64,000 nt of DNA from Zygnema circumcarinatum SAG 698-1b (Eukaryota > Plantae > Zygnematophyceae). This document shows positions 1,935 to 49,494 of the stretch, in pieces. Positions within the stretch are counted from its first letter, which is position 1. Every line of letters begins with the position of its first letter. The position numbers were made by a program, and so were the translations under genes. Location: assembly GCA_037447605.1 (NCBI GenBank), contig CM074814.1, positions 2,604,001 to 2,668,000 of the forward strand, read 5' to 3'. A model generated the notes under the pieces. It saw only the letters and a program-made list of their open reading frames with translations, had not been told where the DNA came from and searched no databases.

Positions 1935-2225
1935 CATTTTTAAATCCGCGCCCCAATTTTTTTTTTTGAGTGAAAAAAATATCGGCCTGCCCGAATCCTC
2001 TCGGAGCGGAAGATCCGTCCACCACGAGATCGTTCGGGGGTGTCCGTCCTTCACACATACGGTGAATCGCAGCCGTCCATTCCCAGGTAGATTGCAACAC
2101 GACAAGCGTTAGATCTGCAGCTCGGCTTGGTCCCAGCGAATGGCACGTGCCCACGTGTCCCGCCAAAGCCGGCTCATTTGTGTTTCCGTACAAACGTTGT
2201 ATGGTCGCAGCTTCGAGGAAAGGCG
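1935..2225. repeat. Degenerate repeat module A (probable DNA-transposon end relic)
   Basis: 1981-2020 matches 3594-3630 directly. About 2045-2225 matches about 3644-3885 in reverse complement (e.g. gggacacgtgggc..gtgccattcgctggg..cagctgcagatc). Confidence 0.6.
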
Positions 2226-2290
2226 AAATTCCCGACATTGAGATCAAATGAAAACGTGGCAGATGGTGATTGGTTTCCAGTTGTGTCAAT

Positions 2291-2449
2291 AGGGGGTGTC
2301 AGACTTAACAAAATCTTACGAAAAGCGTTACGAAAAAAAAGGTTACGAAAGTACTCCGCCGCAGGAGGATCGCGATTATACTGGAGTACTCGTTCTGATG
2401 TTAAACTTACGAACACGCGTACTGAAATTTTTTAAGTCTGACACCCCCT
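2291..2449. mobile_element. 159-bp MITE, PIF/Harbinger-like (copy 1)
   Basis: TIR AGGGGGTGTCAGACTT...AAGTCTGACACCCCCT, 3-bp TSD AAT (2288-2290 and 2450-2452). Inverted second copy at 44909-45067 differs at 2 positions. Confidence 0.9.
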
Positions 2450-2942
2450 AATGGCGAGCCGCCGCAGGCTGGCCGGCCCAGCTCATAATTTTGCGGAGAT
2501 CTCGGGCCGAGAGACGCGCGGACTTGCACATGCGAGGAAAAAAAGGAAAAAAGCATTTTCCGTTTTTAAGCCTTTCTTGTCGATTTTAAAATCGGCCCGG
2601 TGAATAACGGGGTATGTCGATCCAGAAAAGGGGTGAATTTGTCACTACCTTTCAAAAACTGCAACTTCTGGAAATGTCAAAAATGGTCGAAGGCATGGTA
2701 CAAAGCCTGTTGACTTCTTGACAAGTCGCTGTCAAAGTTCTTGGCAGTTTCTGGATTTTTGGAAGAGGCGCCCTTTTTCAATTTTGCCCTTTCGAACCGC
2801 TAAAAACTCCGTGATATCGCAGATATTGCCAATATATTTCTAGTATCGCCGGCGTACCGGTTGTGGCCGACAAACGTTGCCGGTGCTGCGCCGCTCCCGC
2901 CGGTACTGTACGGTATTTCCGCGGCGACCTGCCGCGACGGGA

Positions 2943-3120
2943 TTTTTACAGTAGGCACAGATACGATGTAAGATCAGATTGCTTCCACCGACATTTTTAC
3001 ATAATGCACCGACATAATGTACAATCAGGATGCTTCCACGGACAGTTTTTTACATAAGGCACCGATATTATGTACGATCAGAGGATGCTTCCACCGACAG
3101 GTTTACATAAGTCACCGATA
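2943..3120. repeat. About 52-bp tandem minisatellite, 3.5 degenerate copies
   Basis: Units start at about 2943, 2994, 3046 and 3101; consensus TTTTTACATAA(T/G)GCACCGA(C/T)A(T)TATGTAC(A/G)ATCAGGATGCTTCCACCGACAG. Confidence 0.85.
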
Positions 3121-3534
3121 AATCAAATGAGGAGGACCAATCAGCCAATGCGAGCTGTGGACCAATCAGCGTCGGTCAACCAAATTCGAACCACCTCGCT
3201 TTATGTACGGAGGGAGGGGAGGGGACGGCAGTACAGGGCGGCGGCCTCCGCCATTGCTTGCAGGGGGCCGCAGGGCGAGTCCGGACAAGGCCGCCCGCCC
3301 AGTCTACCAGCTGGCTGTACGAAATACGTACGGACAATGGGAGACATGCTACGTCAAAGGTCAGCCGAGCGAACTGATTGGCTGCGGTCCGAGAGCCCAT
3401 AATGACTGGGCGGAGAAGAATACAAAATAATTTCCGGGCACTGATACCGAATTCACATGTCGTTTAACAGGAATTTCCCGCACATGAGGACGCGCCAACT
3501 GCCGCCCACAAAAAATAAACGAGAATGATAACCT

Positions 3535-3885
3535 TTCCCCCCCCTTTTTGGATATCCCCTCCCCTTGATTTTTTTTGAAAGAAAAATATGTTAGGGCCTG
3601 CCCGAATCCGCTCAGAGCGGATGATCCGTTCGGCTCGCACTTGCGCCTTTCCTCGGAGCTGCGACCGTCTGACTTTTGAAGGACCCAATGCGGTTACAGT
3701 ACCTAGATCCGTACGGACGCGTTCAGGCGAGCCGCGTGCCGTCCGTCGAACTTACCGTCGGACCGTCATACTGGGACACGTGGGCGTGTGCCATTCGCTG
3801 GGCCGAGCCCAGCTGCAGATCGAACGGTTGCCATGGTGCAATCTGCGCGAGAAACGGCGGAGATTCAACGCAACGTGTTAAGGAC
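3535..3885. repeat. Degenerate repeat module B (direct + inverted homologue of module A)
   Basis: See the 1935-2225 feature. Confidence 0.6.
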
Positions 3886-4830
3886 GCGCGCAGGAGGACG
3901 GGATATTCAAAAAGGGGTGAGGGGTTACCATTCTCCAAAATAAAATGTGATATCCGACGTGGCGTGATTTCGACCGTTCGATGAGACTGACCCCAATTCT
4001 CGGCCGCGCGATTTGCGATCCGCCTCTAGAGATTTGCGACCAGGACGACCGCAAAAATGGATTTAACCGCTGCCAACCGGTTTTGTGACGTCATAATTTC
4101 CAGTTGCGTGTGTCATCAACGAATGAAGTAGCGACTATTTTCGTCGTTGTGTGCACGCCGTCGGGCGGCAGAATTTGACCTGATCGCTGGTGCCCCAACC
4201 AGTCGTACTGCATGCTGTCACGTTGCTGGCACATCGAGCGGCAGAATTTGTCACCTGCGCCAACCAACAGGTCGCCAGTTGGTAGCGTCTCCGCAATACG
4301 ACAGCAGAGAGAATCGGCTTCTACATTATGGCAAAGGCTGTGACTTGTTTGTCGTTTTGTGCACGCCGTCGTGTTCTCATCGGCCAACTGGATGTACGAA
4401 AAACTAGAACGGAACAGCGTCATGGAAAACTCTTCACATGGAGGGTGACAAACTAAACAGCAACGGCGCACGGAACAGAGCTCCGAATATGGTTCATGTG
4501 AATGTCACGTCACGTCACGTCCCCGCCCTGCACGTGTACAATTTGAGTCCGGTCTCTCCATGTGGCCTCCATGTGGCAGTTGCTCGAAGATGCCGGTCGG
4601 TACAGTACTGTACTTTGTGCGATTTGGCGATGCGAGCGTGCATGCAGATGCATGCAAGGCCGCGGATCCGGCGGTATCTTGGCCCCACCTCGGAGCAGCC
4701 TGCAGCAAATGACTCTAGCAGCAGAGCAGGTCATAGACAGGGCAGAGACTGTTAAGAGCTGGATAGCATACTTTGCTGTGATCGGATACTTTTCCATATT
4801 CATCTGTCTTCAAGTCTAGAGAGGCAATTC

Positions 4831-5341
4831 TGTTGTACAGCACTAGAGACTGTACAACGTTTTGGGACATAGACTCTCTAGGGAGGTTAGATGCGCCTTG
4901 CAGGTGTTAGAGGCGCATGTGTACGGACGTCCGAGTATACCGTACTGTACCGTACTGTACTGTACCGTACCACTTTTACCTGGTGTATGAAGTGTACGGA
5001 CAGTATAGATGTACAGGAAGTGTGGCGCCGCATCGCCACGCATAGGAGTCAGCCTTCTGGCTTGAACCCTTAATCGATCTAGCCGCTTTCAGAGAGCTTG
5101 CTGAGACGTTTTGCTGTAGCCAAGGCAGGTGCTTATGGGATATGTGTGGGTTAGTGCAAGGAGGGACAAGTAGTGTGGCACTGCTTTACATACCTTGTAC
5201 TCATTCATTGAAAACAAGAGTTTTGGGCCGGCGGGGCTTTTCTCAATCTGTTGAGCTTGTCTTATGTCTGAAATGTCTGAGACTGGAGATTCAGGAGGAG
5301 GAGACACGGCTGGTGGTAAATCCATGGATGGAGTTACAACA
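4831..5341 (+). repeat. 5' LTR of copia element 1 (511 bp)
   Basis: Direct repeat of 10030-10543, followed by the PBS. Confidence 0.97.
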
Positions 5342-5343
5342 AG

Positions 5344-5355
5344 TGGTATCAGAGC
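5344..5355 (+). promoter_or_regulatory. Primer-binding site for initiator tRNA-Met (element 1)
   Basis: TGGTATCAGAGC 2 nt after the LTR end. Confidence 0.95.
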
Positions 5356-6697
5356 TTTCGGATCTGAGGACAGTGGGAAGACCCACATCCAAATCTTCCG
5401 AGGCGGCACAAGTACAGAGTACAAGGAGTGGAGATGGGAGATGACCGCTCTACTCGAAACCAGGAAGCTGCTCCCGTATGTCGATGGTACCATCAAGCCA
5501 CTCGACAAGAAGACAGCGCCTGCAGCCGATTTTGAAGCTTGGACTGAAAAGGATGCCAAATGTAGACACTTCTTTGCTGCAAGTATTAAAGGCAAGCCAG
5601 CTCACATGCTCATGCATCTGAAATCTGCTCGTGAGATGTGGGAGAAACTAGAGGCCACTTATGATCTAGTTGACATCACTGGAAGGTCAAATTTATATGA
5701 TGAATTAGCAACCATTAAAATGACTTCAGATGAGACAACACTAGATTACTTGATGAGGTTTGGCAATCTAATGCAGAAGTTCACTATGCTGGACAAGGTT
5801 TTAGATGAGGATCACCAAATCAATGCATTTTTCAGAGGCCTGCCCAAACGTTTTGACGTCACTGTGAATGGCCTGCGGACTCACCACTCCTTCTCTACAC
5901 TCACGTTAGCCCATGCCATGGCCCGTATTAGAGAGGAGGACACATTTCAAAATGCATCCAGGCCAGGGGCAGATGGTGTCATGGCAATGCGGCAGCAGAG
6001 CCTCCGAGAGCAGCGTGACCGAGGAGGACTTGACAATTTCTGCACTTACTGCAAGAGGAAGGGGCACATTGAAGCGGAGTGTCGGACCAAGAAGGCAGCC
6101 CAAGGCAGCGGGCAGTCTGACAGCGCAGAAGGCAAGGGGAAGGGCAAAACTGTCATCTGCTATAAGTGTGATCAGCCAGGTCACATTGCCAGGAACTGCA
6201 CAGGCATAGCTGGAACAGAAGTAGCAGAGCCTGCACAGGTAGAGAGTAGTTTGATGGCTAGGGCTGCCAAGAGAATCGATTATGTAAATCAAGTTTATCT
6301 TAATGACAAGAATCATTTACCGTGGCTCATTGACTCAGGGGCTTCCAAACACATGTGTAGTGACACCTCTCTCTTTGCAGAAATGCAGCCTTTGGCTGAG
6401 GCTAGATGTGTGTTTTCAGCGACAGGAGATCAAGTTGATGTCACTCATGGTGGAACTGTCCATTTTGCGCCTGTTGGAGAAGGCACACCTTTCCAACTCA
6501 GGCTTGGCAATGTCTTGCATACACCCACGTTACAAAACAATTTCTTTTCTGTTAGTCAGGTGTGTGGCAAAGGCTATGAAGGAATTTTCAGAGAAAATTC
6601 ATGTAAAATTTTACATAGAAAAACTCGGAAAATTCTATGTAGAGGGACACAAAGGGACGGCCTGTACTACTTAGATTGGCAACCGTCGATTCAGGAG

Positions 6698-7023
6698 AAG
6701 GTCGCCGCTGCACGCCTCGGACGGCGCAGATGGTCGCGGTGGAAATTACGCCCGCGTGCCCAGGGCAACGCGGCTTGACGCTGACTCCACACGCCTGAAC
6801 CTTTGGCGCCCTATGAGCCGGCAGTAGCGTCGCGCATTACCCGAAGCGCGGCGGCGGCCGCCCCGATCCGTCGCGCTCACCGGACCATCGGGCGGCCCCT
6901 TACAGCATTGCAAAGCGGCCAGTTGCCAATGGCGTAGCGCAGCGCCATGCTCCCATGGCACCAGAGGGCACGGGCGATCCCCCTCAGCGGCGCACAGGCT
7001 CCAGCTGCAATGGGGGCATAGAG
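6698..7023. other. 326-bp GC-rich foreign insertion in the copia pol
   Basis: Removing it (GAG duplicated at 6695-6697 and 7021-7023) restores LDWQPSIQE-SVHQVSDSAQLWHRRLGH, collinear with element 2. Confidence 0.85.
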
Positions 7024-10000
7024 TCTGTGCATCAAGTCTCTGATTCGGCGCAGCTTTGGCACAGGCGCCTTGGCCATCTATCGTACAGCGGTCTGGCGAC
7101 CCTTGCTACCCAGAGCCTTGTGAGGGGGCTCCCCTTTACGAAACTCTCCAAGGTCGAAACTGTCTGTCCGGACTGTGCCGTGGGCAAGAGCCACCGTCAC
7201 CCCTTCCGAAACCATGGCGTGGACTCTTTCCGCGCATCCCAGCGGTTGGAACTAGTTCACAGCGACTTGTGTGGGCCAATCACCCCAATGACGCCCGGCG
7301 GTGCACGGTACTTCATAACCTTCCTTGATGACTTTTCTAGGAAGATTTGGGTTGTACTGCTGGCACATAAATCTGACGCCTTTGAGGCCTTTCAGGATTG
7401 GCAGCTCCAGGCCGAACGGCAGTCCGGTGAGAAACTTCAGCGAATCCGGACGGATAATGGGGGAGAGTACAAATCCATCCAATTCTCTGACTATCTCAAG
7501 TCTTTGGGGATTCGTCATGAGTTCACAGCGCCATACAGTCCCCAGAGCAATGGTGCAGCAGAAAGAGTGAATCGTACTCTTGGAGACATGGCGAGGTCCA
7601 TGCTGAGTGAGTCCCCCTTCTCCTTGACCTTTTGGGGAGAGGCCATCCTCACAGCAGCCTATCTTCGGAACAGGTGTCCCTCTAACGCCTTGAAAGATGA
7701 AGGGCGAGTACCTGAAGAAATGTGGAGCGGCAGCAAGCCAACAGTTCAACACCTCAAAGTGTGGGGCTCCCAGTGCTGGACTACGATTCCCAAGGTGCAG
7801 CAGACTACCAAGTTTAGCCCAAGAGGAGAGTTTGGTTACTTCCTCGGCTACAATGATGATAGTCTGACCTACCGCGTCGTGGAATCCCTCTACGAACAAG
7901 GTTATGACTACCCGAGATCTCCTTGTTGAGGAGACCATCACGGAGGCAGATCAAGCGAGGATGCGGCACTTACCACTCCCAGACATCGAGTTCCTCCCTG
8001 TGAGGGACACTCTGGGAGACGAGGCGTTCCCACCACCTCCACCTAGCCCTTTGGATGAAGAGTTTGCAGAGCAGTCTTCCATGGCTGAGCAGCCATTGTG
8101 GTCACAACCACTCTCGAATGAGCAGCAACATAGCTCATCAGAGCTCCCGGGGGAACTGCCTGATGAGCTTTCTGACGACCCTGATATGGGCCCTATGGAA
8201 GATGATGTACCTTTGGCACCGGCACCATCCGAGGTACTGCCCACGGCTAGCCGTAGATGGGGTCCACACTCAGAGAAGAAGCAACGACCCGTCCGGGATA
8301 CCAGAACCCCGGATTGGTATGGTGAGTGGAAGCGCTCCCCGTGGAAGAAGAAGGGCTCCAAAAGGCGACCTCCAGAAGAAGTTGAGGAGAGAGTTCCGTT
8401 GGACTCTGCTGACTTTGCAGGGATGGCCATTTGTCTCATGGCCCACGCCGAGGAGCCTCAAACATATTCCGCTGCATTGGAGGGCGCGGATGCAGGGAAG
8501 TGGAAGGAAGCCATTGATAGTGAGCTAAACAGCCTTAAGGAGAATGGAACGTGGCGGTTGGAGCCGCTGCCCCCAGGACGAAAAGCTATCGGCTGCAAGT
8601 GGGTATTCAAGGTCAAACGGAAGTCAGATGGGAGTGTTGACAGATTCAAGGCACGGTTAGTGGCCAAAGGGTTCTCACAGAAGTACGGCATAGACTATTC
8701 TGAGACCTTTGCACCCGTGGTCAAGTTTAACTCACTCCGAGCATTGATCTCTATCGCCGCTGAAGAAGGAATGCACGTCCACCAGTTGGACATCAAGACT
8801 GCTTTCCTCTATGGGGACCTCCAAGAAGAAATCTACATGCAGCAGCCTGAGGGGACTGTTGACAAAAGGAACAGACATCTTGTGTGCGGAGACTTGTTAA
8901 AAGCCTCTATGGGCTCAAACAAGCACCGAGGATCTGGTACCAGAAGATTCATGACCTGTTGGTAGTGAACGGCTTCACTCGGTTCCATGCTGACCATTCA
9001 GTGTACAAGAAGGGGAAGGGAGGTGCCCAGCTGTTTGTAGGCATCTACGTTGATGACCTGATCATTGTGAGTGCCTCTTTGCCCAGTATTCAGGGTCTCA
9101 AAGACCTTCTACAACAGAATTTTCAGATGTCGGACCTCGGCCCTGCAGAATACCTCTTGACATCGGCTTAAGAGGGAAGGATGTGATATGTTCCTCTGCG
9201 GGGAAGCGATGTATTTAGAAGTTTTAGTGAGAAATTCAATGTGGGCAGTGCATCCCAAGCTCCACCCCCATGGACGCCAGCGTGAAGCTCAGCTGTGACA
9301 TGAGCCCTCAGACTGAGGCAGAGACGAGAGAGATGATAAAGATTCCATACCGATCTGCCATCGGGAGCTTGATGTACCTCATGGTGGGCACACGCCCTGA
9401 TCTGGCCAAGGCCGTCAGCACTGCAAGTAGGTACATGGAAAATCCTGGGGTCAAGCATTGGGAGGCTGTCAAGAGGATCTTCAAGTACCTCAAGGGCACA
9501 TCTCATTTCGGAATTCGGTTTGAGAGGGGGAGCGGCACTCCTGTGTATGGCTACACAGATGCTGATTGGGGCGGGGACCTCGATACTTCCAAATCCACTT
9601 CGGGCTATGCCTATCTCTATGCACGTGGGGTCATTTCTTGGAGTTCGAAGTTGCAAGAGACAGTTGCTCTCTCGACCACCGAATCCGAATATGTGGCTGC
9701 TTGTCACGCCGCTCGGGAAGCCGTGTGGTTATCGTTATTCTTTGAGGAATGTGGGCGGCCCCAACTTCCCTTGCCGATTCTCACCGACAACCAGTCCTCC
9801 ATTGCGCTTGTTGAGAATCCAGTGTTTCATCGGCGGAGCAAGCACATCAAGCTCCAATATCATTACACGCGGGAACTCGTGGAGGCGGGTGAGATCACAG
9901 TGTCCTTTGTCGAGACAGAAAACATGGCAGCGGACATGCTTACAAAGGGGGTCAGCGGGCCCATCATGTGGAGGAATGGTCTTCTACTGGGGTTGGGTCC

Positions 10001-10029
10001 GTTTCGAGCCTAGGCCCCAAGAGGGGGAA

Positions 10030-10543
10030 TGTTGTACAGCACTAGAGACTGTACAACGTTTTGGGACATAGACTCTCTAGGGAGGTTAGATGCGCCTTGC
10101 AGGTGTTAGAGGCGCATGTGTACGGACGTCCGAGTATACCGTACTGTACCGTACTGTACTGTACCGTACCACTTTTACCTGGTGTATGAAGTGTACGGAC
10201 AGTATAGATGTACAGGAAGTGTGGCGCCGCATCGCCACGCATAGGAGTCAGCCTTCTGACGGCTTGAACCCTTAATCGATCTAGCCGCTTTCAGAGAGCT
10301 TGCTGAGACGTTTGGCTGTAGCCAGGGCAGGTGCTTATGGGATATGTGTGGGTTAGTGCAAGGAGGGACAAGTAGTGTGGCACTGCTTTACATACCTTGT
10401 ACTCATTCATTGAAAACAAGAGTTTTGGGCCGGCGGGGCTTTTCTCAATCTGTTGAGCTTGTCTTATGTCTGAAATGTCTGAGACTGGAGATTCAGGAGG
10501 AGGAGACACGGCTGGTGGTAAATCCATGGATGGAGTTACAACA
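10030..10543 (+). repeat. 3' LTR of copia element 1 (514 bp)
   Basis: Preceded by the PPT, followed by TSD AATTC. Confidence 0.97.
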
Positions 10544-10671
10544 AATTCCAGCTTCCAATTTTGAAATTCAGGATGTTAATAAAGCCAACCCCACTTGTGG
10601 GTGCAGTCAGGGCAGGTATTGAAATGATGAGATGAATCGATATCTGATGGAACCAATCCCTCATTTCTGCC

Positions 10672-10851
10672 ATGTTGGGGGATCCCTGGGACGCAGGTCC
10701 CTTAGAGGCGCCCCGGCCACTCTCTCTGGTAGAGAGAGCGGTAGTGCTGGCCCTTGCCGTCTCCCTCGACAACGATTTCTTCTCCCGCCACAGGCAGGAC
10801 TGTAGAACCCACTTGCATTCTGTTTTTACATCAAGCAGGAGGGGGGTGTGA
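10672..10851 (+). pseudogene. Phospholipid-scramblase C-terminal fragment
   Basis: Translates RPLSLVERAVVLALAVSLDNDFFSRH, resembling the plant scramblase C-terminal motif RPLTLxERAVxLxLAxSLDNDYFSRH (recalled). No upstream exons recognised. Confidence 0.55.
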
Positions 10852-13001
10852 GGGAGAAGGCGGGGGAGGGGGGCGAGGGGAGAGAGGGAGAGAGTCAGAG
10901 ACAGGTGATTAATGAGACTTTGCTGGTTTGTTGTTATCCATTGCTGTCCTGTTTGGAGGGGACATCACTGAAGCAGGCATCTTGCGATGGGCCCTGTTAG
11001 GCGGCAGGGAATGAATCATGGACGACGCTCCTATGTGCTGAGCAGTCGGCGCCGTTGGAGAACTCGAATGTTCTTTGAGAGACTATGCGTGTGGGGAGGG
11101 GAGCCACGGGACAGTATGGAGAGGAAGCATTCACCAATACCTTTGGATATCGGAGATTGTAAGAGTTAGGGTTGAGGAATGTGGTGTTTGGATACAGTTG
11201 TTCATCCTTTTTGAGAGAAGTGCAGACACCAGCTTTATTTTGGATATCGCTTCTGCATGGCGATATCCTTTAAAGGAGTTTGGCAAAGGAGGAACTGATG
11301 CTGCTGCAATACGAGTTCCGATTATGGACGGATAGTGGCACAGCACAATCAGTCTCCGGGCAGGGGGGCCCATAAAACTAGGGTAACCAGTTGCTGTCAA
11401 TCAGAGAGTAAGCTGGACAGATATGACTAGTAGAGGGATTATCTGTCCTTGTGAGTTCCATTCTAAACTGTACATTTGAATTTACATTTCAATCCTTCAC
11501 TTCGACCCTTAAAAGCCCAGTAGCCATTTTTATCCATTACGAGCGTTTTCTACAACGAAAACACGTGGCCATATGATAATCACATCAAGTTTCGTTTACA
11601 TTAGCACGTGCTTGACGGGTTTTACATACTCACCTTAAAGGTTTCACCATCTCATGGGAAAACATTTCAGTTGGAAAAGAAGTCCGCCAAACAACACAGT
11701 TTTATCAAGAATGCGGAAGATAGAAGCTTCTTGGGGCAAATAACGGAGCAGAGTGACAAGACAAGTTGAAACAGCAGTATGAAACGTTCAAAAGCACTTG
11801 ATTTCTTAGTTGAATGAGAAAGGCATAATAAACAATGCTATTCCAATGTAGTCTTACATGTAAAGAGCAGGAGTGCGCGACGGAGGGAGAGATAAAGGGA
11901 AAGAGGGAGGAGAGAGTGGGAGGGAGAGGCTGAGGGAGAGGAAGAGGGAGCGCACGCATGTGACTGCAAGACATGCGCAGCTTTGGGTTCAAACTTCTGC
12001 TGATTTCAGTGACGCTTTAATAACCAGAACAAACTGAAACAACCGAAACAAGGGTGAAACAGGAGCAGATGGAGTACCATGGAGTATGGGAAAACCTCTA
12101 AACTTGAACAATGTGAACATCGTCTTATTAAAAAAATGAAATGACAGTCTTGAACAAGGCATTATTAGACATCATTTTTCTTCCAACATATCACAATCAG
12201 CGCATTCAATAGTTTGTTTCCTAAACATAAACCAGCTCATAACATATACGAATAGTTTCGTCAACTTTCCTGAACCTCGCTAAAGCGGACCAACGCATTA
12301 CGGTCGTTCCGATTAAGGTAATGGAGACTTGAATGTATGGTGTGACTCTCTTTTCTGTCCAAACAATTTACGGTAGTACAAAATCTCCCGTTCAAAACTG
12401 TGCCCCCCCCAGCAGTAACCTGTAGCGCTGTAAAAAAATTTCGCTGCAGCGCAAATGAGCTTATCGAGAATTCCTTGCAGGCCATTGTCGATTGATTCCA
12501 ACGGCCCCAAAGTGTAATTAGAAAAGCCCCGAAAGTTACTCAAAGTAAGCGGATGATGCTCCTTCACAATGTCCTTCATACACGCAATGGCTATATTGGG
12601 AGAGGTCAACGAGTAAGTATAAACTTGAAAGGTCGCTGGAGAAATGTCGCTTGCGATGTAAAACGCTGAATCAAGTATGTTACCATGTGCAGACATCAGC
12701 GACTTTTTTATACTCTCACAGCATAGGGTTACCCTTTTCTCTCTTGCAGACTCTTTGACTAACAAATGAGTTACCCACTCCCATCTCAAATGGACTCCCA
12801 CCAATCGCTCTCCGAACTCCTCCTTTGCCACCTTCGCCAACTCAATCAATTCAGGAGAAAACTGCACATCGTCTAAATGAGTATCAAAGCTCCCTTCGAC
12901 GGCGCCCTCCCAAGTATTCTTTTCAAATATGAGAAGGTTTCCCTTAATTAAGCTCACTCGTTCAAGGAGTTGGTCTGTGTTGACAATTTGAGCCTGGTCC
13001 C

Positions 13002-13724
13002 TGTCAGAGTTAGTTCCCCCTTCGGATGTGCCCTCACCCACAGCGGAAGACATTACAGACTGAGAGAACACACAAGGGAAACACGCTGAAAAATATGGAG
13101 AAAGCTCTCAGGCCTAAAACTCCATTAAATAAAAGGCAGGATGATTACATAGAGTATATTCAGCACTAAGCCTAGCACTACTCTTTAAACACCCCCCCCC
13201 CCTTCTCTCGGTTCAACACACAGTCTCTAAACAGCCTACACAAGGCCTGTCAGACACTGTAAACTACAGAGAGTAATTCTAAGCTAAGCACTAAGCACTA
13301 TAAATGCCGAAGCACTGAAGGGAGCCGCAGCTCCTCATTCGGCCGCACTCCCACCGCTCCAATAAGCCTCCATGTCTGCCGCGCCTTGCTCGCTTCGACG
13401 CCCGCCCTGGCTCCCGCCCTGGATCCCGCCCTGGCTCCCGCCCTGGCCACCGTATTGTGCTAGCTGGCTGCCCGGCAGGCCATGTCCTCCGCCCAATGAG
13501 CCTGGGAGCTCGCCATTCCTGCGCTGCCTCCTTGCAATTCCTGTAACCCTAATTGCCAAGTGACGGCCCCCGATTGGCTGCCCCTTCGGCCTAGCCAACC
13601 GGTGGTATACCGCACCACCCGCCATACAATAAGCGTTCAGTACTATTGTCCGTACATCCGTACAGTTCGTATACTTCGTCCAAATCCCACAACTCTCAGC
13701 TGTACGGCTATCCGTACGCTGACA
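13002..13724 (-). repeat. 3' LTR of copia element 2 (723 bp)
   Basis: Matches 17959-18593 apart from 2 noticed substitutions and an 88-bp segment (13573-13660). Confidence 0.97.
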
Positions 13725-13750
13725 ATCCCCCTCTTGGGATTTGATGCTGA

Positions 13751-16700
13751 TCAGAGAGGGCCAATCCCGACCAAGCGGCAGTTGGTCCATAGAATCTCAC
13801 CGGTGACTGCTTTGGTTAACATGTCGGCAGCTTGCTCCAAAGTGCCGACAAAATGTACGGACACCCGCCCGGCCTCCACCTGTTCACGGACGTAATGATA
13901 TTGGATCTTGATGTGCTTGGATCGTTTGTGAAAGACAGGGTTCTCCACCAGCGCAATCGAAGATTTGTTGTCGGTTCGCAGCTTGATTTGATTCTGCGGC
14001 CTCCTGCATTCTTCGAAAAAGTTCTGTAACCAAATCGCCTCCTTGGTGGCGTGGCAGGCTGCGATATATTCAGCCTCTGTACTTGACAGCGCCACCGTAT
14101 CTTGTAGTTTTGAGCTCCAGGTCAAAGATCCGCCGCAGTTAATGAACACGTATCCTGATGTTGATTTTGACGTATCAGGATCTCCTCCCCAATCAGCGTC
14201 CGTGTAACCGTACACCCGGCTTCTTTGCCCCCTCTCAAATTTTATCCCGAATCCTGCTGTCCCTTTTACATACCGCAAGATCCGTTTGACCGCCTCCCAG
14301 TGTTGTCGTCCTGGATTCTGCATGTACTTTGAGGCTGTACTAACTGCTTTGGCTAAGTCTGGCCTAGTACCTACCATCAAATACATGAGGCTACCGATGG
14401 CTGACCGGTATGGAATGTTGGTCATCGCCTTGGCCTCCGCCGCAGTCTGAGGCTCCATCTCCTTCGAGAGTCGTACACTGCAATCCATGGGGTTGGCAGT
14501 GGGGACACAATCTTGCATATGAAATTTTGCAAGAATATCCCGGGCATATTTCTCCTGACTCATAAATAGGCTTCCCTCGGCCCCCCTCTTAAGCTGAATC
14601 CCTAATAGGTACTCAGCTTCCCCGAGATCGGACATCTGGAAGTTTGTCTTCATAAGATCTTTGAGATCCTGAATGCTCGTCATGGATTGGCTTATGACAA
14701 TCAAATCGTCCACGTATATGCCAACGTACACCATCTTGTCTCCTTCTCCCTTCCTGTAGACGGAGTGATCTGTTTCGAATCTGGTAAATCCGTTAACTCG
14801 CAAAAGATTGTCGATTTTCTCGTACCAGATTCTGGGCGCCTGCTTGAGGCCGTACAAGCTCTTCACCAACCTGCACACAAGTTTTCCTTCGCCCTGCTTG
14901 ACCGTCCCTTCAGGTTGGTCCATATAGATTTCCTCCTCTAGATCGCCGTACAGGAAAGCGGTCTTAATATCTAATTGGTGCACGTGCATGTCCTCAGAGG
15001 CTGCGATGGAGATTAGGGATCTGAGAGAGTTGAATTTGACAACTGGAGCAAAGGTCTCGGAGTAGTCTAGTCCGTACTGCTGACTGTACCCCTTTGCGAC
15101 CAGTCTGGCTTTGTACCTATCAATGCTTCCGTCAGATTTCCTTTTGATTTTAAAGACCCATTTACATCCTATGGTCTTTCTGCCAGCGGGCAGCTGCTCC
15201 AGACGCCACGTGCCATTCTCGGACAGGCTATGTAACTCACTGTCAATAGCCGTACTCCACGCCGCTGCGTCCGTACTCTCCAAAGCGGCCCGCAGAGTTT
15301 GGGGCTCCGAATCGTTCACCATCAGAACAGCTGCCATGGCTGCAAAATCCGAGGAGTCGGTCGGAACGCGCGCGGTCTCTGACACTCCGCCAACGGACTG
15401 CTGCCAGGGTGTCCGTACGGAGTGCTCGTAGGGGTCCAAACGCACGGAGACCTGTCGCTGACGGGTTCCCCTGCGTGGTGAATCAATCCTGGATTCAGGG
15501 TCATCGGATTCTGATTGTACGGCGGGGGCGTCAGGGCGAAGCGGCTCTGGGCGTAATGGATTGAGAGGTACCGACTCCATGCTCCTGGTTTCTGTTGCCA
15601 CGGCAGCACTTGCTGCTGGGAAGGGACTTGCCAAGGCTCTCGACCGCACTTCTTCCTGCACTTCTTCCCCCTCTTCGTAGAAGAACCTCAACTCACTTGG
15701 ACTCGGATTGGTGGTAGCGATGTCTGGCAGGTCATCGTGAGGTGAGTCTTCTGCGAAAGTGACATCCCGACTACTGTCAACAACGTTTGTGACTGGGTTC
15801 CACACCCTATATGCCAAACTGTTAGGAGCATAGCCGAGAAAATAACCTGGATTTGAGCGAGCAGCAAATTTAGATTGTTGCCTCGCTTTGGGAACTGCCA
15901 GCCAGCATTTGGAGCCCCAGACGCGTAAATGCTTCACTGTGGGCTTCACACCACTCCATGCTTCCTCCGGGACTTTGCCGTGCAGCGCAGTCGTCGGGCA
16001 CCTGTTTCGGATGTATGCTGCCGTACGAACTGCCTCACCCCAGAATGTGAGAGGAAAAGGAGATGCGCTGAGCATAGTCCTGGCCATATCTCCTAGAGTT
16101 CTGTTGATCCTTTCAGCTGCACCATTTTGTTGAGGAGTATACGGGGCTGAAAACTCATGCTGAATCCCAAGGGAGCGAAAATAATCTGTAAACTCACCAG
16201 ACTTGTACTCCCCTCCATTATCAGAGCGCAATGTTTTGAGTTGAAGGCCAGTCTCCCTTTCAACCTGTAAATGCCACTCTTTAAAGGCGCCAAATGCTTC
16301 TGATTTCTGTGCTAAAAGTTTGACCCAAACTTTCCTGGAAAAATCATCTAAGAAAGTAATGAAGTACCTGGCTCCACCTGCACTGCCTGGAGTGATTGGG
16401 CCGCAAAGGTCAGAGTGAACAAGTTGAAGACGTTCTTGAGCACGGTTCTCCTCAGGTCGTTGCTTGCTAAAAGAATGACGGTGAGCTTTGCCAGCTTCGC
16501 AGTCTGGGCAGACATCTTGATCTTCAATGTGCAGTTGTGGCCCTAATCCTCGAACCAAACCTTTTACCGCAAGGGTCTTCAAACTGGGAAAGCCTAAGTG
16601 ACCCAGCCTGCGATGCCAGAGCTTGGCAGTAGAATTCTCAGTCACTGCACACACCTGTTCAAATTTCGCCTTCTTCCAGTCGAGAAAGTAGAGGCCGTTT

Positions 16701-18010
16701 CTCTCGGTGCCCTTGCACAAAGTCTGCCCGGTGGACTTCCGAACCACCTCACAAGCATCCCCATCAAACCAAGTTCTATATCCCTGTTTCCCCAACTGGC
16801 TGACTGAAATGAAATTATTCTGCAACCCAGGAGTGTGCAGGACATTTCCAATGGAGAGAACGGTTTTCTTGCTGACTCCAATCGCTTCCAACTTGACGAG
16901 TCCGCCTTGAGTCACTTGAAATTTATCACCCGTGGCAGCATAGACCGAACGAGAAGTTTCCAACTGGTGTAGCTCTGCAAACATGTGAGCCTCGGCACAC
17001 ATGTGCTTTGTTGCTCCAGAATCGATGAGCCATGGATTGCTGGGAGGATCCTCATCCTGAAACTGACCAACAAAAGCATCCTGTCCATCATCCGCGAGCA
17101 GCAGATTAGTTTCCTGCGATTTCGGGCAGTTTACCGCTTTATGACCTTTTTCCTTGCAAGTGTAGCATGCGCCGTTAAATCCAGTTTTCCTCGGCTCAGC
17201 GCCCGGCTCGTTCATCTTCCCTTTGCTGCGACAGTCCGGTGACAGATGTCCTGGCTTTCCACAAGTGAAGCACCTTGGCGGCTGCCGGCCTGAATTTCGA
17301 TCCTCCTTGTCTCTTGACACATTGTGAAATGCTAGCACATTGTCAGAATGGCCCTTTCCCTTTTTCTGCTGACGATTGTCTTCATCTTGGATTCTTCCCT
17401 TGACCTGGTCTATGTTCATTTTAGTACAGTTTAGAGTAGTTCTAAGTGAAGCAACAACCAGATTGAACCTCGTGGGCAGTCCCTCCAAAAACACATCTAT
17501 TTTATGATCTGAAGGTAAGGGCTGTCCGACTGCTACAAATCTGCTTATCAGGCTATTAAACTTAACCATATAGCTGACAAGAGTTTCATCATCTTTCATT
17601 TTTAAGCTTGCAAGGTCTGAATAAAGACTGACACTAGTACCTTCGTCTGAAATGTGATAAACATCATACAGGCTTTTCCACATATCGGAAGCAATAGGAA
17701 GGTCAATTAGTAACCCCGCTGGTACAGTACCTACATTCATTGCAATATAACAAGCGACGGTCTCATTCATGTCGTTCCACTTTTCGTATTCTGCTACCTT
17801 TGTGATCGGTGGAGCCTTGATGGTTCCATCGACGTACTTCATGAGTTTCTTCGATTTCAAGAAGTACGTCATACGCCACTTCCAGGTTTTGTAATCTGTG
17901 CCATCGAAGATGGGCACTCTGTAATTCACAGCCTCGTCACCGTGTGCTCTGATACCACTGTCAGAGTTAGTTCCCCCTTCGGATGTGCCCTCACTCACAG
18001 CGGAAGACAT
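13751..18010 (-). CDS. Copia gag-pol polyprotein (about 1419 aa from the ATG at 18010)
   Basis: Two CCHC knuckles (CFTCGKPGHLSPDC, CYTCKEKGHKAVNC), WLIDSGATKHM, WHRRLGH, D-D-E integrase, QLDIKTAFLYG/YVDD RT and YTDADWG...ADMLTK RNase H, with no stops. Confidence 0.98.
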   Translation of the reverse strand: MSSAVSEGTSEGGTNSDSGIRAHGDEAVNYRVPIFDGTDYKTWKWRMTYFLKSKKLMKYVDGTIKAPPITKVAEYEKWNDMNETVACYIAMNVGTVPAGLLIDLPIASDMWKSLYDVYHISDEGTSVSLYSDLASLKMKDDETLVSYMVKFNSLISRFVAVGQPLPSDHKIDVFLEGLPTRFNLVVASLRTTLNCTKMNIDQVKGRIQDEDNRQQKKGKGHSDNVLAFHNVSRDKEDRNSGRQPPRCFTCGKPGHLSPDCRSKGKMNEPGAEPRKTGFNGACYTCKEKGHKAVNCPKSQETNLLLADDGQDAFVGQFQDEDPPSNPWLIDSGATKHMCAEAHMFAELHQLETSRSVYAATGDKFQVTQGGLVKLEAIGVSKKTVLSIGNVLHTPGLQNNFISVSQLGKQGYRTWFDGDACEVVRKSTGQTLCKGTERNGLYFLDWKKAKFEQVCAVTENSTAKLWHRRLGHLGFPSLKTLAVKGLVRGLGPQLHIEDQDVCPDCEAGKAHRHSFSKQRPEENRAQERLQLVHSDLCGPITPGSAGGARYFITFLDDFSRKVWVKLLAQKSEAFGAFKEWHLQVERETGLQLKTLRSDNGGEYKSGEFTDYFRSLGIQHEFSAPYTPQQNGAAERINRTLGDMARTMLSASPFPLTFWGEAVRTAAYIRNRCPTTALHGKVPEEAWSGVKPTVKHLRVWGSKCWLAVPKARQQSKFAARSNPGYFLGYAPNSLAYRVWNPVTNVVDSSRDVTFAEDSPHDDLPDIATTNPSPSELRFFYEEGEEVQEEVRSRALASPFPAASAAVATETRSMESVPLNPLRPEPLRPDAPAVQSESDDPESRIDSPRRGTRQRQVSVRLDPYEHSVRTPWQQSVGGVSETARVPTDSSDFAAMAAVLMVNDSEPQTLRAALESTDAAAWSTAIDSELHSLSENGTWRLEQLPAGRKTIGCKWVFKIKRKSDGSIDRYKARLVAKGYSQQYGLDYSETFAPVVKFNSLRSLISIAASEDMHVHQLDIKTAFLYGDLEEEIYMDQPEGTVKQGEGKLVCRLVKSLYGLKQAPRIWYEKIDNLLRVNGFTRFETDHSVYRKGEGDKMVYVGIYVDDLIVISQSMTSIQDLKDLMKTNFQMSDLGEAEYLLGIQLKRGAEGSLFMSQEKYARDILAKFHMQDCVPTANPMDCSVRLSKEMEPQTAAEAKAMTNIPYRSAIGSLMYLMVGTRPDLAKAVSTASKYMQNPGRQHWEAVKRILRYVKGTAGFGIKFERGQRSRVYGYTDADWGGDPDTSKSTSGYVFINCGGSLTWSSKLQDTVALSSTEAEYIAACHATKEAIWLQNFFEECRRPQNQIKLRTDNKSSIALVENPVFHKRSKHIKIQYHYVREQVEAGRVSVHFVGTLEQAADMLTKAVTGEILWTNCRLVGIGPL

Positions 18011-18593
18011 TACAGACTGAGAGAACACACAAGGGAAACACGCTGAAAAATATGGAGAAAGCTCTCAGGCCTAAAACTCCATTAAATAAAAGGCAGGATG
18101 ATTACATAGAGTATATTCAGCACTAAGCCTAGCACTACTCTTTAAACACCCCCCCCCCCTTCTCTCGGTTCAACACACAGTCTCTAAACAGCCTACACAA
18201 GGCCTGTCAGACACTGTAAACTACAGAGAGTAATTCTAAGCTAAGCACTAAGCACTATAAATGCCGAAGCACTGAAGGGAGCCGCAGCTCCTCATTCGGC
18301 CGCACTCCCACCGCTCCAATAAGCCTCCATGTCTGCCGCGCCTTGCTCGCTTCGACGCCCGCCCTGGCTCCTGCCCTGGATCCCGCCCTGGCTCCCGCCC
18401 TGGCCACCGTATTGTGCTAGCTGGCTGCCCGGCAGGCCATGTCCTCCGCCCAATGAGCCTGGGAGCTCGCCATTCCTGCGCTGCCTCCTTGCAATTCCTG
18501 TAACCCTAATTGCCAAGTGACGGCCCCCGTACAGTTCGTATACTTCGTCCAAATCCCACAACTCTCAGCTGTACGGCTATCCGTACGCTGACA
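17959..18593 (-). repeat. 5' LTR of copia element 2 (635 bp)
   Basis: Adjacent to the PBS; lacks 88 bp relative to the 3' LTR. Confidence 0.97.
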
Positions 18594-20179
18594 GTCCCTC
18601 CCACTACTCTCACTCTATGACATGCTTGCAATGTCTGAATCACGACAACTCTCAAGTGCACACACTGAAAAGCAGATGATCCAATCAAGCACACACCGAA
18701 AGAGAAGAAGTAAGGAGAAAGCCCCTCGGCCTCAAAACTCCTTAATAAAGAAATGAAGAGAAACAAGCATTTATGTCAAGCCCTCAGGCTTCCACCTATG
18801 CTCTGACTAACTCCCCTACTTCCTGCTGCCCATACAGCCAGGCAACTACACTCGGCAACACGAGCCAAGCTACAGCTGAATTAAGTTGAACTCTCAGGTT
18901 GATTAACTCCTAATCAACACCTACTTAAATACTAAGCGCTGCACTACTCCACGTTCTACTGCACGCCGCCGCGCGCCACCGCGCTCCACCGCACAGCGCA
19001 CCTCCATGTCGCTGGCGCTCCACCGCACAGCGCACCTCCATGTCGCTGGTGATGCTCCACGTCTCCAGGAGCTCGCCTCGCACCGCTCTGGAACTCACCC
19101 TCAGGGTCGCCATGGCCAGGAGGGAGAAGGTTCGTACAGTTTCCTCCTTCCAAAGGCGCACCGACCTTCTCGAAGCTTCGCATCCACGCGCGCGCTTCTC
19201 CAGCTCCTGTGTTGGCCGTCCGTACACCCATGCATCTCGTACGCTCCGGACATTTCGTACGGTCGTCCACTAAAGCAATAAGCAATACAAAGCTGATCGC
19301 GCAGCCTAACGCTGCGCGCCACGTGTCCAAACTATACTTATCAATTCTAAGTAGACTCCTGTGGTGGCGCGGCCTATCGCCGCCCTCCACGTGTCTTCAT
19401 CAGACTTCCCGTGTTCCCACTAAGAACAGCACCCTAGCGCCTTGTTCAGACTGTGACCAAATCTCCTAAGGACCGCCGACAAAGGCTAAGGACCGTACAG
19501 CGTACAATTCTAGGCTATACCCCTATTGTACCCAACAGTCTGCCCTAATGGCTCCTTCTATTAGCCTTTCGCCGACATTTGATTTGAACAGAGTCAGTGT
19601 TGGAAGCATTGGGAGCGACCCCATGAGTGAGAGCCATTAAAGGGAGTCCGCGGTGCACATTTGAAATATATTCTTCGATCTCACACAGATTATTGGTCCT
19701 CCTCATACAAAGGTACTGGACTTTTGGCACAATTTCAATGCGTCGCATTCTGCGCACATAAAACTCGTAAGTTACCCAATCAACCTGGTTCCCAAGTTTC
19801 CTCGCATCAAAATAAGTACAGTACGGAAAATTTTGATACATAGCAATGTTGCTGTGTCCCACACGAGGAAGACTGAGTACTCGGCCAGTTTTCTTAGCCA
19901 CAAATATGACCTCACTCATATGAAGGCGGGCCCTTGAAAGCTGCTCTGGAAGCTTGAACACGGCCAAAAACGAGGAAGCCTTGAACCTCCGATCCGACTG
20001 CACGTAGATTGAAGAAAAAAAAAACATTAAACCTTCAATAATCGCAAAAGGCAACATCAAGTATGACAGATGCAAGCACTGAAATCGATTCAAAATATTA
20101 TCTTTATTGAAAACGAGCTACTCCCTGCGTTCGTTGCTCCCCCACACCCCTACCATCCGGATCTGTTGCTTCGACCCGC

Positions 20180-20400
20180 CTAGCTCTCCCTCTCCCTCTC
20201 CCTCCTCTCCCTCTCCCTCTCCTCTCCCTCTCCCTCTCCCTCCTCCCTCTCCCTCTCCCTCTCCCTCTCCTCCTCCCTCTCCCTCTCCTCTCCCTCTCCC
20301 TCTCCCTCTCCCTCTCCTCTCCCTCTCCCTCTCCCTCTCCTCTCCCTCTCCCTCTCCTCTCCCTCTCCCTCTCCCTCTCCCTCTCCCTCACTCTCACTTT
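20180..20400. repeat. (CCCTCT)n microsatellite in the O-FucT-like intron
   Basis: Direct inspection. Confidence 0.9.
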
Positions 20401-21528
20401 CACACTCACTCTCGCCCCTCCCTTTCCATGTAGAGACATTCCTGTCACACTAAAAAAAAAATCCGCTCTGCTCCCTTGTCACTTTCGTCTTCCAGCAATA
20501 CCACGCATTTCCACTAACTCGGTTTAAAACATTAAAGTCATACCCACTCCCTCTCTTCCTTCTCCTCGTGTGCTCGTTCACTCTCTCCTCCTCTCCTCCT
20601 CTCCTCCTTTTTCTCCCTCATCCTCTCCAATTCCATCACTTCTCTATCTCTCCCCATTCCAATCTTCCTTTGCCTCTCCCTTTCATTCTCTCCACCCTCC
20701 ACGTCCAGCTGGTGCCTCTCTCTTCCCTCTAGAATATCATAATTCCGATAAATTTGTCTCCTGATCCAAAGCTCCCCACAACCAGCCGACCTACCATATA
20801 CCTCGACGAGTCCCCCATCTCCACCGCACAAAGCGGGCTGTCCAGAGGCGCCCGACCATGTGGCAACATCTTGAACGTCCGCTGATCTGGACCGTCCAGA
20901 TTCCACGCCCTCGCCCGCGCGGGCCTCTCCGCCGGCCCGCGGTCCGTCATGAGCTCGAGCACCGCCGCCGCCCGCCCGAGCTCGTCCGCCGACGCCCGCT
21001 CGAAGTGCCGCAGGACGGAGGCCTTCCAACTGCGCTTAAACAGGGAGGTGTCAGCGGCCGCGGGGGCAAGGAAGAGGGACAAGCAGCAGAGAAGGGACAG
21101 GTGGAGGGTGGTCATGTGAGGGAGGGAGGGAGGGAAGGAGGGAGGGAGGNNNNNNNNNNGGGAGGGAGGATCGAGGGAGAGGGAGAGGGAGAGGGAGAGG
21201 GAGAGGGAGAGGGAGAGAGAGTTGGAGCGACCTAGGCGGGGTAAGGCTGACGGCTTACACTGGTCTGACGGATGCCTGCGCAGTGCGGGCCGCTGGCGGG
21301 CCCCGAATCCGATTTGTCGGCGGGCTAGTGAAGGCGACGGCGGGCTTCCATCGAGCGATCTGGTCAACGCCACGTGCCATATGGCCGGGCGTAGGAACAA
21401 AGTCGTCGGTCACGTCACGGTGGGCACATGCGCACTCCTTGGGGAGGGCCGCATCACGAGTTCACGACTAGGGATGGCCCGCGTTATAAATTCCGAATAC
21501 ATTATATATTTTACAACGGGTTTAAAAG

Positions 21529-24202
21529 AAGAAAATGATGTTTGATTGAACTCACGATGGCAAGGCCATCAAATGTACATGGAGAAAATCGACATAAGGA
21601 ACCAAAAGAAGCGGTCACAACGGACATAAGGACCAAGAGAAAGCCTTGAAACGGAAATCAACTTCTAGGCGCAACAACACGGCACTAGAAGCAGCCGCGA
21701 AGGTCGCCAATGTGGGGCGCAGTACGCGCGGGAAGGGGCGGAAGACCACTGGGACNNNNNNNNNNAGGTCGGGCCGCACATTGCGCTCGCCCGTTGAAGT
21801 CGGCCGAGGTGGTATAACATGGGTCGGCTCGCGCTGCACAAGGTAACCCGCCTCCTGAGCCACGGCGGCAATAGCATCACGGACAACATTGTGGGCCAAA
21901 ATGCGCTCGCCACCGCGTACACACCGAAGAAGATGCACACCCTGCGCATCAATCGAACGACCACAACCACAACGGGGAGAGCCCTGCAAAAGGGGGTGGG
22001 GGAGCCCAAGACGAAGACGTGCAGCAAGCTGAAACTGGCTCGGAGAGAGTCGAAGGGTGGAAAAAATCGGGGTAGCAGCCAGCCACGCCCCTGCACCAGG
22101 ACCAGCACAAGATCGCAATCGAGCACGCGCAACATCGGAAGGGAGAGCCGCAATAAGGGTAGAAAACTCAGCAGCAACAACCTCCTCTGTCACAATAGTC
22201 TGGACGCGCGAAACAGACTCAACAGCCAGGGAAACAAAAGGGGGAACACGGGCTTGGGCACTAGAAGGGAGCAAACCATGAGCAGCGCGCAAAGCAATCT
22301 GGAAGGGAAGATGACCATCTGTAGCGTAACGCTACAGCGTGACCCTGGAGGCGTACTGATAGTGATACTATGACTATCCCTTCATCTTAGCGCCTAGCGG
22401 TTAGGTTAGGACGCTGCCAAGATTGCAAGAGGTCTTGGGCTCGATCCTTGTTGCAGGCAAGGGATCTCTTTTGGATCGTACTGGTCGTCCGTACAGGTGT
22501 ACGGACGCACCGCACCGCTCGGCGGCGCGACCCGCGAGATGCGGCGGCATCTTTTGACAAGTACCGTCCGTACTGTACGGGCGGGCTGACAGGTCTGACT
22601 CTGTCAGACTTAGCCGTGCGCCGCTGCACGACGGCGCGCCGCTTCGCGACGCGCCCCGTGAGATGCGGCGAGACCACGGGCTTGTCCTCAGCCGATAACT
22701 CGGCTAAGGATCTCCGCCACACGGCGGGCTCTGATTGGGCAGTCCCGCTCCCGGTCCTCCATGCTGGTAGGGGGTTCAACGGGGGGAGCTTAAGGGGGAC
22801 TGCGCCCGGATGGGAGACCATCCGAGCTCTTTGTACCAGCATTGAGCTCACGCTCTTCTCTCTCTCTCTCTTTCTCTCTTTGGCACTTAGACTCTCAGAG
22901 CAGCCTGCCAGGGGGCAGGTTGTTACACCATCATCAACATGAGCAACAACAGACTGGAGCAACGTCCGATCATCCACAAGGAAACGTGAAGCTAGAACCG
23001 GAGCAACAAGCTCCCAACTACCCAAAAAGGCAGGGGATGCAATACGTGTAGTTGGGACAAGCCCCAAACCGCCTGCAGAAATAGGGAGCGAGGCTTGCAA
23101 ACGAGCAAGCGGGCCTTCCGGCCGGTCAAAAATACCCGCACCCAAGAGGCGATGACACACAGAAAATAAACGCTCATCAAAAGATCGCAAAGAAGCAAGA
23201 AAAGCATCGGTAGGAGGGAGGGTCCGTAAGAGGTAAGAGGGACGTAAGGCAAAACAACGAGTAAGTAAGGAAAAAGCCACCTGAGGATCAGAAAGATGAG
23301 GCAACTCATCAACCTGAGACACATCCTCAACCAAAGCATCCTCCACAAAACGATCAACATATGATGCAGCTCCAAAAGGGCAACCAAGGACGCGGATACC
23401 AAGCGCGTCTGAGCAAGTCTGTATACCCGACGGTAGCGAAAGGGAAGAGGGGAGACCAACTGGAGACCAAGCAAAACATTTGGACAAATTAACAGTAAGC
23501 TGCAAAGCTGCCAGCCGAGTACGAAAATCAGTAAAAGCAGCAACAACCTGGTCGGCGGGGCCAAGAATGTGAGTATCGTCAGCAACGGAAGGGAAAAGGC
23601 ACCCTGGAAAGGCTTGTGCACACGCTCGAAGCGCACGAAGGTGTGCCAAAGCAAACAAAGGACCCCCTAAAGGGTCGCCCTGGCGCGTCCCTGTCGCAGA
23701 CTCAAGATTGCCAAGAAAACTGCTAGTACCGCCAAAAGGGAAAAGGAGAGGGCTCGAACGAGAATAAAAGGCACGAACAAAGGGAAAAATAGAGGCGATA
23801 GGGGCAGGAGCCTCGCGCAACTCCCGAAAAATCTCCTCACGTGCAACACTGTTGAAGGCGTTCGTCACATCAACCTGCAAAACCACCCAATCCGGATGAA
23901 GGTCAAGCGTCGCTCGAATACCATGAACGACCGCCTCGCAACCCCCAGGGGTGGCGACACCAAACTGATAAGGGGAAAAATGATCCTGAAAAGCCCCCTG
24001 CAACTGCAAACACATAGCACGGGCAACCACACGATACAAGACCTCCCCCACAGCGATGGGGCGAACGCCGCCGGCAGGCTTGGCAAGAGCCACTAAGCGA
24101 GCAAAAGTAAGGAGATGACTAATAGACACAGGGACACGACCCTGAGCAATGATGGAAGCAAGCTGAAAAAACAAAGTAGTAATATAGTAGTAGTAAGAGT
24201 AG
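21529..24202 (-). mobile_element. 5'-truncated CRE-clade non-LTR retrotransposon (RT + CCHC + restriction-like endonuclease)
   Basis: RT motifs VRPIAVGE, QFGVATPGGCE, QVDVTNAFNS, GTRQGDPLG, VADD. C-terminal CGC...HLLRC...HNVVRD zinc finger and RPD (then N-gap 21756-21765). Candidate TSD TAAAAG (21523-21528 and 24203-24208). Confidence 0.9.
22320..22927 (+). mobile_element. 608-bp solo LTR inserted in the CRE ORF
   Basis: TGTAGCG...TGTTACA termini, TSD CCATC (22315-22319 and 22928-22932). Excision restores VAHVDDG-HLPFQIALRAAHG. Confidence 0.93.
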
Positions 24203-24364
24203 TAAAAGTAGTAATATATTACAAAGTAAAACACTATATTACATATATTATACCCACTCGTTTTGAACAATTAACGACCGTACGACCCGTACGGTCTTAC
24301 CATACCAAAATTAGGTCGTTTTGGCGTTGGCGTTGCAAAATGCGTCCGTCTGGTTCACTCTGTC

Positions 24365-49488: not shown

Positions 49489-49494
49489 GAGGGG

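Follow-up and report, generated by a model that had tools for sequence, protein, structure and literature searches.

The locus analysed here lies in a 64,000-nucleotide stretch of Zygnema circumcarinatum DNA (the window) and raises the question of what becomes of half a gene when retrotransposons are inserted into its exon. A 246-codon open reading frame (ORF) starts at an ATG inside a copia LTR and continues to the native stop codon of a split O-fucosyltransferase-family gene. An earlier, sequence-only reading of the window had suggested that this ORF, the C-terminal half of the enzyme without a signal peptide, may be expressed or selected. The structure of the locus, the origin of the start codon and the traces of selection are considered in turn.

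The split host gene

All features of the locus are on the minus strand, the sequence being read from 20200 to 17900 and from 13800 to 11800. The host gene consists of two parts.

19538–20057, minus strand: 5′ half of the host gene, with ATG at 20057 and a hydrophobic N-terminus
about 19578–19588, minus strand: apparent frameshift of the one-base class (mutation or assembly error), placed by three-frame translation and alignment with homologues
12313–12975, minus strand: 3′ half of the host gene, 220 open codons, with the native stop at 12315–12313

The main frame of the 5′ half is open as far as a TAG at 19547–19545. Three-frame translation shows that the last 14 host codons before the insertion stand in another frame; the change of frame, at about 19585–19578, directly follows residues V-Q-I-K-C. 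The 3′ half is open throughout and includes the HLR motif as well as the family motifs of the C-terminus, so that the description of a frameshifted 5′ half and an open 3′ half was accurate. In the alignment with homologues, a 6.56-kb insert is the sole separation between the collinear host halves, and homologues map onto the window at these two halves only. Since both halves are collinear with homologues of 379–389 aa, the pre-insertion gene was a single exon of about 390 codons encoding a protein with a hydrophobic N-terminus; in one relative the signal peptide is clear.

Homology searches took each host half as a separate sequence. A HMMER search with the 3′ half among 1.84 billion representatives returned only eight relatives (best identity 32%), and no sequence, whatever its length, reached 50% identity; a word-index homology search with the same half, in the range of 121–385 aa, gave no match. 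The relatives originate from Mesotaenium (the nearest include Mesotaenium endlicherianum), Closterium and metagenome or run assemblies, and seven of the eight carry PF10250. The 3′ half alone matches the Pfam O-FucT family (PF10250) with 17.5 bits (E 0.0033), below the cut-off of 31.5, and a Pfam scan of the 5′ half alone found no match. The nearest homologues, P0001, P0003 and P0008, pass the PF10250 threshold with 47–53 bits, and the 5′ half is 42–43% identical to P0001 and P0003 over 136–151 aa. A phmmer search of the PDB with the 3′ half gave nothing useful; POFUT1 was reached only via the family profile, which finds the C. elegans protein (3zy2, E 2.4e-6) with the HLR motifs aligned. This motif (residues 88–90 of the chimeric ORF) is invariant in the family and represents the conserved HxR motif at the beginning of the donor-binding domain. 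The PF10250 relatives and the profile match to POFUT1 support, at the level of the family, the earlier naming of the host gene as an O-fucosyltransferase. Compared with POFUT1 and POFUT2 (Pfam PF10250, GT-B fold), the host gene has the same HLR motif but is a divergent member, with 24–35% identity to its nearest relatives.

Two of the relatives (242-aa P0002, P0009) were considered as candidate stand-alone genes for a C-terminal half and were rejected as exon fragments. Their ORFs are located on metagenome scaffolds of 1.3–1.8 kb, the homology begins upstream of the ATG, and no N-terminal half lies within reach.

Nested copia insertions

The insert is composed of a solo LTR (LTR1) and, within it, a complete element (element 2). 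LTR1 and its target-site duplication are arranged as follows.

19538–19542, minus strand: target-site duplication 1, upstream copy, CAGAC (GTCTG on the plus strand)
18594–19537, minus strand: main part of the solo copia LTR1, beginning with TG
12978–12996, minus strand: last 19 nt of LTR1, ending with CA
12973–12977, minus strand: target-site duplication 1, downstream copy, CAGAC

Element 2 with its own duplication aside, only LTR sequence is found between the two CAGAC copies, which characterises LTR1 as a solo LTR. A first copia element was inserted into the host coding exon and collapsed to this single LTR. The ATG of LTR1 at 18623–18621 is of the gag type and reads M-S-stop; the TAG at codon 3 matches a GAG at 28164–28166 in a related LTR of the window (27426–28206), as had been described. 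The two LTRs are 72–80% identical in blocks, and for the alignment of the LTR ends both parts of the last ~330 nt of LTR1 were set in their pre-insertion order. A 144-aa ORF of LTR1 contains no Pfam domain.

Element 2 has the following components.

18594–18598, minus strand: target-site duplication 2, upstream copy, GGGAC (GTCCC on the plus strand), inside LTR1
17959–18593, minus strand: 5′ LTR, 635 nt, holding the gag ATG at 18010
17946–17957, minus strand: PBS, TGGTATCAGAGC, one base past the LTR end
13751–18010, minus strand: intact gag-pol ORF, 1419 aa, with ATG at 18010 and stop at 13753–13751
13725–13735, minus strand: polypurine tract, abutting the upstream edge of the 3′ LTR
13002–13724, minus strand: 3′ LTR, 723 nt, TG...CA
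12997–13001, minus strand: target-site duplication 2, downstream copy, GGGAC

The element is nested 24 bp from the end of LTR1, in the same orientation. Its LTRs are distinguished by an 88-nt deletion in the 5′ copy and two substitutions and are otherwise 99.7% identical. Pfam domains of the polyprotein include gag (53–223), a zinc knuckle (252), Pol_BBD (333–417), integrase (542–632) and RVT_2 (938–1181), as well as pre-integrase and SH3-like domains, all in copia order and with E values down to 1.5e-76. The PBS, which we take to match the 3′ end of initiator tRNA-Met as in plant copia elements, is itself protein-coding within gag and is read S-G-I-R. Element 2 has the LTRs, 5-bp duplication, domain order, PBS and polypurine tract of Ty1/copia and is a young and intact member of this group. 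An exact look-up of the polyprotein returned no record, and the best match in a homology search had 48% identity.

The nested anatomy at the split gene was confirmed in all its coordinates and sequences; the solo LTR flanked by GTCTG and the second element flanked by GTCCC are both present as the sequence-only reading had described them. The probability that this structure is an assembly artefact is negligible. The window does hold four 10-N scaffold gaps, but none of them is in 1168–21149; both insertions are bounded by perfect 5-bp target duplications and, with the inserts removed, the host halves abut exactly.

Elsewhere in the window, ten further long ORFs gave one weak pyrophosphatase match in Pfam and nothing else. 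A 406-aa ORF at 48268–49485 is probably of low complexity and had no match in a homology search.

The gag start inside the LTR

The start codon of the chimeric ORF, ATG 13053 in the 3′ LTR of element 2, corresponds in position to ATG 18010 of the 5′ LTR, which opens gag-pol. In the 5′ copy, 17 codons separate this ATG from the LTR edge, beyond which the ORF passes through the PBS. By its position, ATG 13053 is the gag start of the element itself, not a fortuitous codon of the LTR. Another element of the window has the same arrangement, and a related LTR ends with a comparable leader.

4831–10544, plus strand: element 3, a degenerate copia, with target-site duplication AATTC
27426–28206, plus strand: related LTR, ending with ATG 28158 and 16 open codons

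The gag ATG of element 3 (5264) is inside its 5′ LTR, which ends at 5342, and the ORF runs through the PBS. The related LTR has no PBS after its end, and a matching target duplication was not seen; at its end and at that of LTR1 there are homologous ATGTC leaders of 16–17 codons. Across the window, in the two full-length copias as in the two lone LTRs, gag starts 50–80 nt short of the LTR end; the leader inside the LTR comprises 16–26 codons before the edge (the end of U5) in these copia families.

Because the gag ATG is in U5, every 3′ or solo LTR of this kind ends in an ATG and an outward-reading leader. The supply of an ATG is therefore built in, and only the frame match, with a chance of 1/3, is accidental. 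That the LTRs had supplied an in-frame ATG to the host gene was correct insofar as the ATG is located in the LTR and in frame; it was no special supply, since every such LTR carries this gag start. Read outwards into the flank, the leader of element 3 continues for 6 codons and that of the related LTR for 3; of the outward-reading leaders in the window, only the exonic one yields a long ORF.

In Saccharomyces, the PBS of Ty1 is located inside the GAG ORF (PMC4974528). The algal elements resemble Ty1 in that the Gag start is upstream of a coding PBS, in the initiator tRNA-Met primer and in the 5-bp duplication; unlike Ty1, the copia families described here have a leader of 16–26 codons inside the LTR. 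The consequence, an outward-reading ATG leader on each 3′ or solo LTR, is seldom discussed.

The chimeric open reading frame

12313–13053, minus strand: chimeric ORF, 246 codons, from the ATG of the 3′ LTR as far as the stop of the host gene

The program-made list of ORFs gives 12313–13071 (minus strand) with a GTG start; counted from ATG 13053, the product has 246 aa and is stop-free. It is composed of 17 gag codons, 8 codons of LTR1 and target-site duplication 2, one junction codon and 220 host codons, and the three-part peptide proposed earlier was recovered without change. Of the three read-out frames at position 13001, one is open, and this is the frame of the host. The start codon in the LTR is in frame with the host ORF, an event with a prior of 1/3; the caution that chance is real here, at 1/3 for each in-frame event, was well placed, as the match does not exceed chance.

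The AlphaFold model of the chimera, built with an alignment of 11 rows, has a mean pLDDT of 66 and a pTM of 0.70. Residues 1–61, which include 36 residues of the host N-terminal domain, have pLDDT values below 50, and residues 62–246 are folded. The top Foldseek matches in the PDB are all POFUT2, POFUT1, FUT8 or NodZ, though the matches are weak (E 3e-3 or weaker, TM 0.42). According to the model, the product would be a donor-binding domain following about 60 poorly structured residues. The earlier notion of a C-terminal GT-B half may hold for the folded part, but the half would not be a clean one.

Exact look-ups of the 246-aa chimera, the 252-aa version with the GTG start and both versions of the 5′ ORF found no record, and the collections searched contain no transcript- or gene-model-derived protein matching the 3′ half. 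Such blanks in the protein databases carry little weight, as the intact copia ORF is equally unrepresented there.

Open frame, lesions and conservation

Of the substitutions possible in the 3′ half, 5.3% produce a stop. With the indel rate set to one tenth of the substitution rate, the probability that this half is still open is 0.78 at a neutral divergence of 0.3%, 0.46 at 1% and 0.21 at 2%; the LTRs of element 2 have diverged by 0.3%. That all 220 codons of the 3′ half are still open is what one would expect if the disruption is recent, and it is compatible with neutrality up to a divergence of about 1–2%. The asymmetry of the lesions, with one frameshift in the 170-codon 5′ half and none in the 220-codon 3′ half, is not significant (P ~0.44).

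Among the positions conserved in the family, the 5′ half keeps 18 of the 18 invariant and 31 of the 36 conserved ones; for the 3′ half, the figures are 10 of 14 and 20 of 35. The identity of the 5′ half to homologues (34.5%) equals the family norm of 35.7%, and that of the 3′ half (24.2%) is below the norm of 31.2%. This contrast reflects long-term divergence, not the period since the insertion, and gives no hint that the 3′ half has been protected. A comparison of dN/dS between the 5′ and 3′ halves was unfeasible, the nearest relative being only 32–43% identical. The suggestion of a selected 3′ half is not borne out: its openness is expected if the disruption is recent, the asymmetry is within chance and it is the less conserved of the two halves.

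Origin and possible roles of the chimera

The reading that best accounts for the locus, with a probability of roughly 0.82, is that of a recently inactivated single-exon gene of a small O-fucosyltransferase-like family (PF10250) in a streptophyte alga, in which the 246-codon ORF is a by-product and not a maintained gene. The ORF would result from the architecture of the element and the youth of the insertion: when an LTR comes to lie in an exon in the sense orientation, its leader should match the host frame in one case out of three. The 3′ LTR may well give rise to some read-out transcription, as is common for LTRs; nothing indicates that a product reaches useful amounts or is under selection.

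The 3′ LTR could, for instance, promote the fusion of the gag leader to the C-terminal O-FucT domain, to be translated as neutral or mildly harmful noise. The 3′ LTR shares 99.7% identity with the 5′ LTR, which must drive the intact element, and has the same TATA-like box (TTTATAG, about 250 nt upstream of ATG 13053), leader and gag ATG; two tiny upstream ORFs are present at 13150 and 13125. Nevertheless, such expression is unlikely: copias of recent origin tend to be silenced, promoters in 3′ LTRs are as a rule weak, the model has low confidence for residues 1–61 of the product, and exact and homology look-ups in protein collections were blank. Plants and animals offer well-documented cases of LTR read-out and of chimeric transcripts (PMC6238269; bioRxiv 10.1101/610832), among them that of Evelknievel in Arabidopsis CMT1 (PMC6238269) and a transcript initiated by an intronic TE at FLC (bioRxiv 10.1101/610832). 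As in these cases, the LTR element of Zygnema is inside a gene, in the sense orientation, and could in principle initiate or alter host transcripts; the CMT1 and FLC cases rest on transcript data, the present one on an ORF.

It is very improbable that the C-terminal GT-B domain, devoid of a signal peptide, is expressed from the LTR and selected, for example as a cytosolic GDP-fucose binder or dominant-negative. Several features do count for a functional product and against a by-product: the ORF is complete, starts with an ATG whose context, the gag leader of the element itself, is proven for translation initiation, and continues in frame as far as the host's own stop codon; the catalytic HLR motif is intact, as are the donor-domain motifs of the C-terminus; the folded part matches the donor domain of fucosyltransferases (POFUT2, POFUT1 and FUT8 as top Foldseek matches, E ~3e-3); and the sole host lesion falls in the 5′ half, outside the chimera. 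The features of the ORF and the domain are, however, all inherited from the parent gene and expected after a recent disruption, and the frame match and the distribution of lesions are within the chance levels given above. It is the less conserved half that would be retained, no relative has a stand-alone C-terminal half, and catalysis by a GT-B enzyme requires both domains. The narrower idea that 17 gag residues fused to a GDP-fucose-binding domain were kept for a new role, as a nucleotide-sugar binder or a dominant-negative of paralogous transferases, is scarcely credible.

A host gene that still works, with the 6.56-kb insert and the frameshift spliced out as an intron, is extremely improbable. 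By eye, a GT just before the frameshift and an AG at the downstream target duplication can be joined in frame, but both candidate sites fit the splice consensus poorly, chance in-frame GT/AG pairs are common, the intron would be very long, and the join would remove about 14–15 codons that align with homologues. The splicing of exonic retroelements from host mRNA is known from other genes (PMC6238269).

Implications

With the by-product reading preferred, the locus is a glycosyltransferase gene, one of a small family, knocked out by transposons in an ordinary way. In the copia families of this alga, an LTR lying in an exon in the sense orientation has a one-in-three chance of generating a complete-looking fusion ORF; annotators should expect such ORFs, which are not to be taken as evidence of exaptation. 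Nothing at this locus points to more than that; were expression and conservation of the fusion demonstrated, it would illustrate neatly how an LTR can drive the release of a domain.

LTR organisation and other repeats

A block running roughly AGTTTTGAGGCC...GGGGCTTTCTCC is common to all four copia-type LTRs, which are diverged from one another outside it. The block lies at the following positions:

13080-13130, minus strand, 3′ LTR of the intact Ty1/copia element (element 2)
18730-18780, minus strand, solo LTR
28030-28075, plus strand, LTR related to the solo LTR
5200-5250, plus strand, 5′ LTR of the degenerate copia element (element 3)

It is located upstream of the gag ATG, about 80-130 nt ahead of the LTR end, and may mark the R/U5 boundary or serve as a packaging or polyadenylation element.

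The related LTR (27426-28206, plus strand) is 72-80% identical in blocks to the solo LTR. It lacks a PBS downstream, and the 5-bp sequences on its two sides, CCTAG on the upstream side and AAGCT on the downstream side, do not match as a duplication; rather than a simple solo LTR, it is an element that has been rearranged or truncated.

Element 2 is intact except that its 5′ LTR lacks 88 nt present in the 3′ LTR (18529-18527 in the 5′ LTR versus 13657-13570 in the 3′ LTR), with short CGG microhomology at the borders of the deletion. Since the deletion is located within U3, it could affect the promoter that element 2 passes on to its next copies.

A 627-aa ORF (22387-24270, minus strand) contains an RVT_1 reverse-transcriptase domain (E 2.3e-19) and belongs to a retroelement class other than the copias. 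Tandem repeats with a 12-nt period span several kilobases (54400-58500) and have an extreme strand composition, with a GC content of 0.65-0.68 and a GC skew down to -0.84; further arrays, with periods of 14 nt and 8-12 nt, are found at 49450-49820 and 51560-52200.

Other predicted proteins and relatives of the O-FucT-like gene

The ORF at 46430-47632 (plus strand) has a weak match to inorganic pyrophosphatase (E 7e-7). A word search with the adjoining 406-aa ORF (48268-49485) retrieved zero relatives, which is consistent with a disordered tail.

The rare O-FucT-like family has at least two members in one environmental metagenome (ENA sample ERZ28593383), both on short eukaryotic scaffolds (L002:413-1243 and L003:584-1723). 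One of these two relatives has its C-terminal half in an exon of its own and therefore carries an intron close to the domain boundary; the O-FucT-like gene of the window, in contrast, consists of a single exon.
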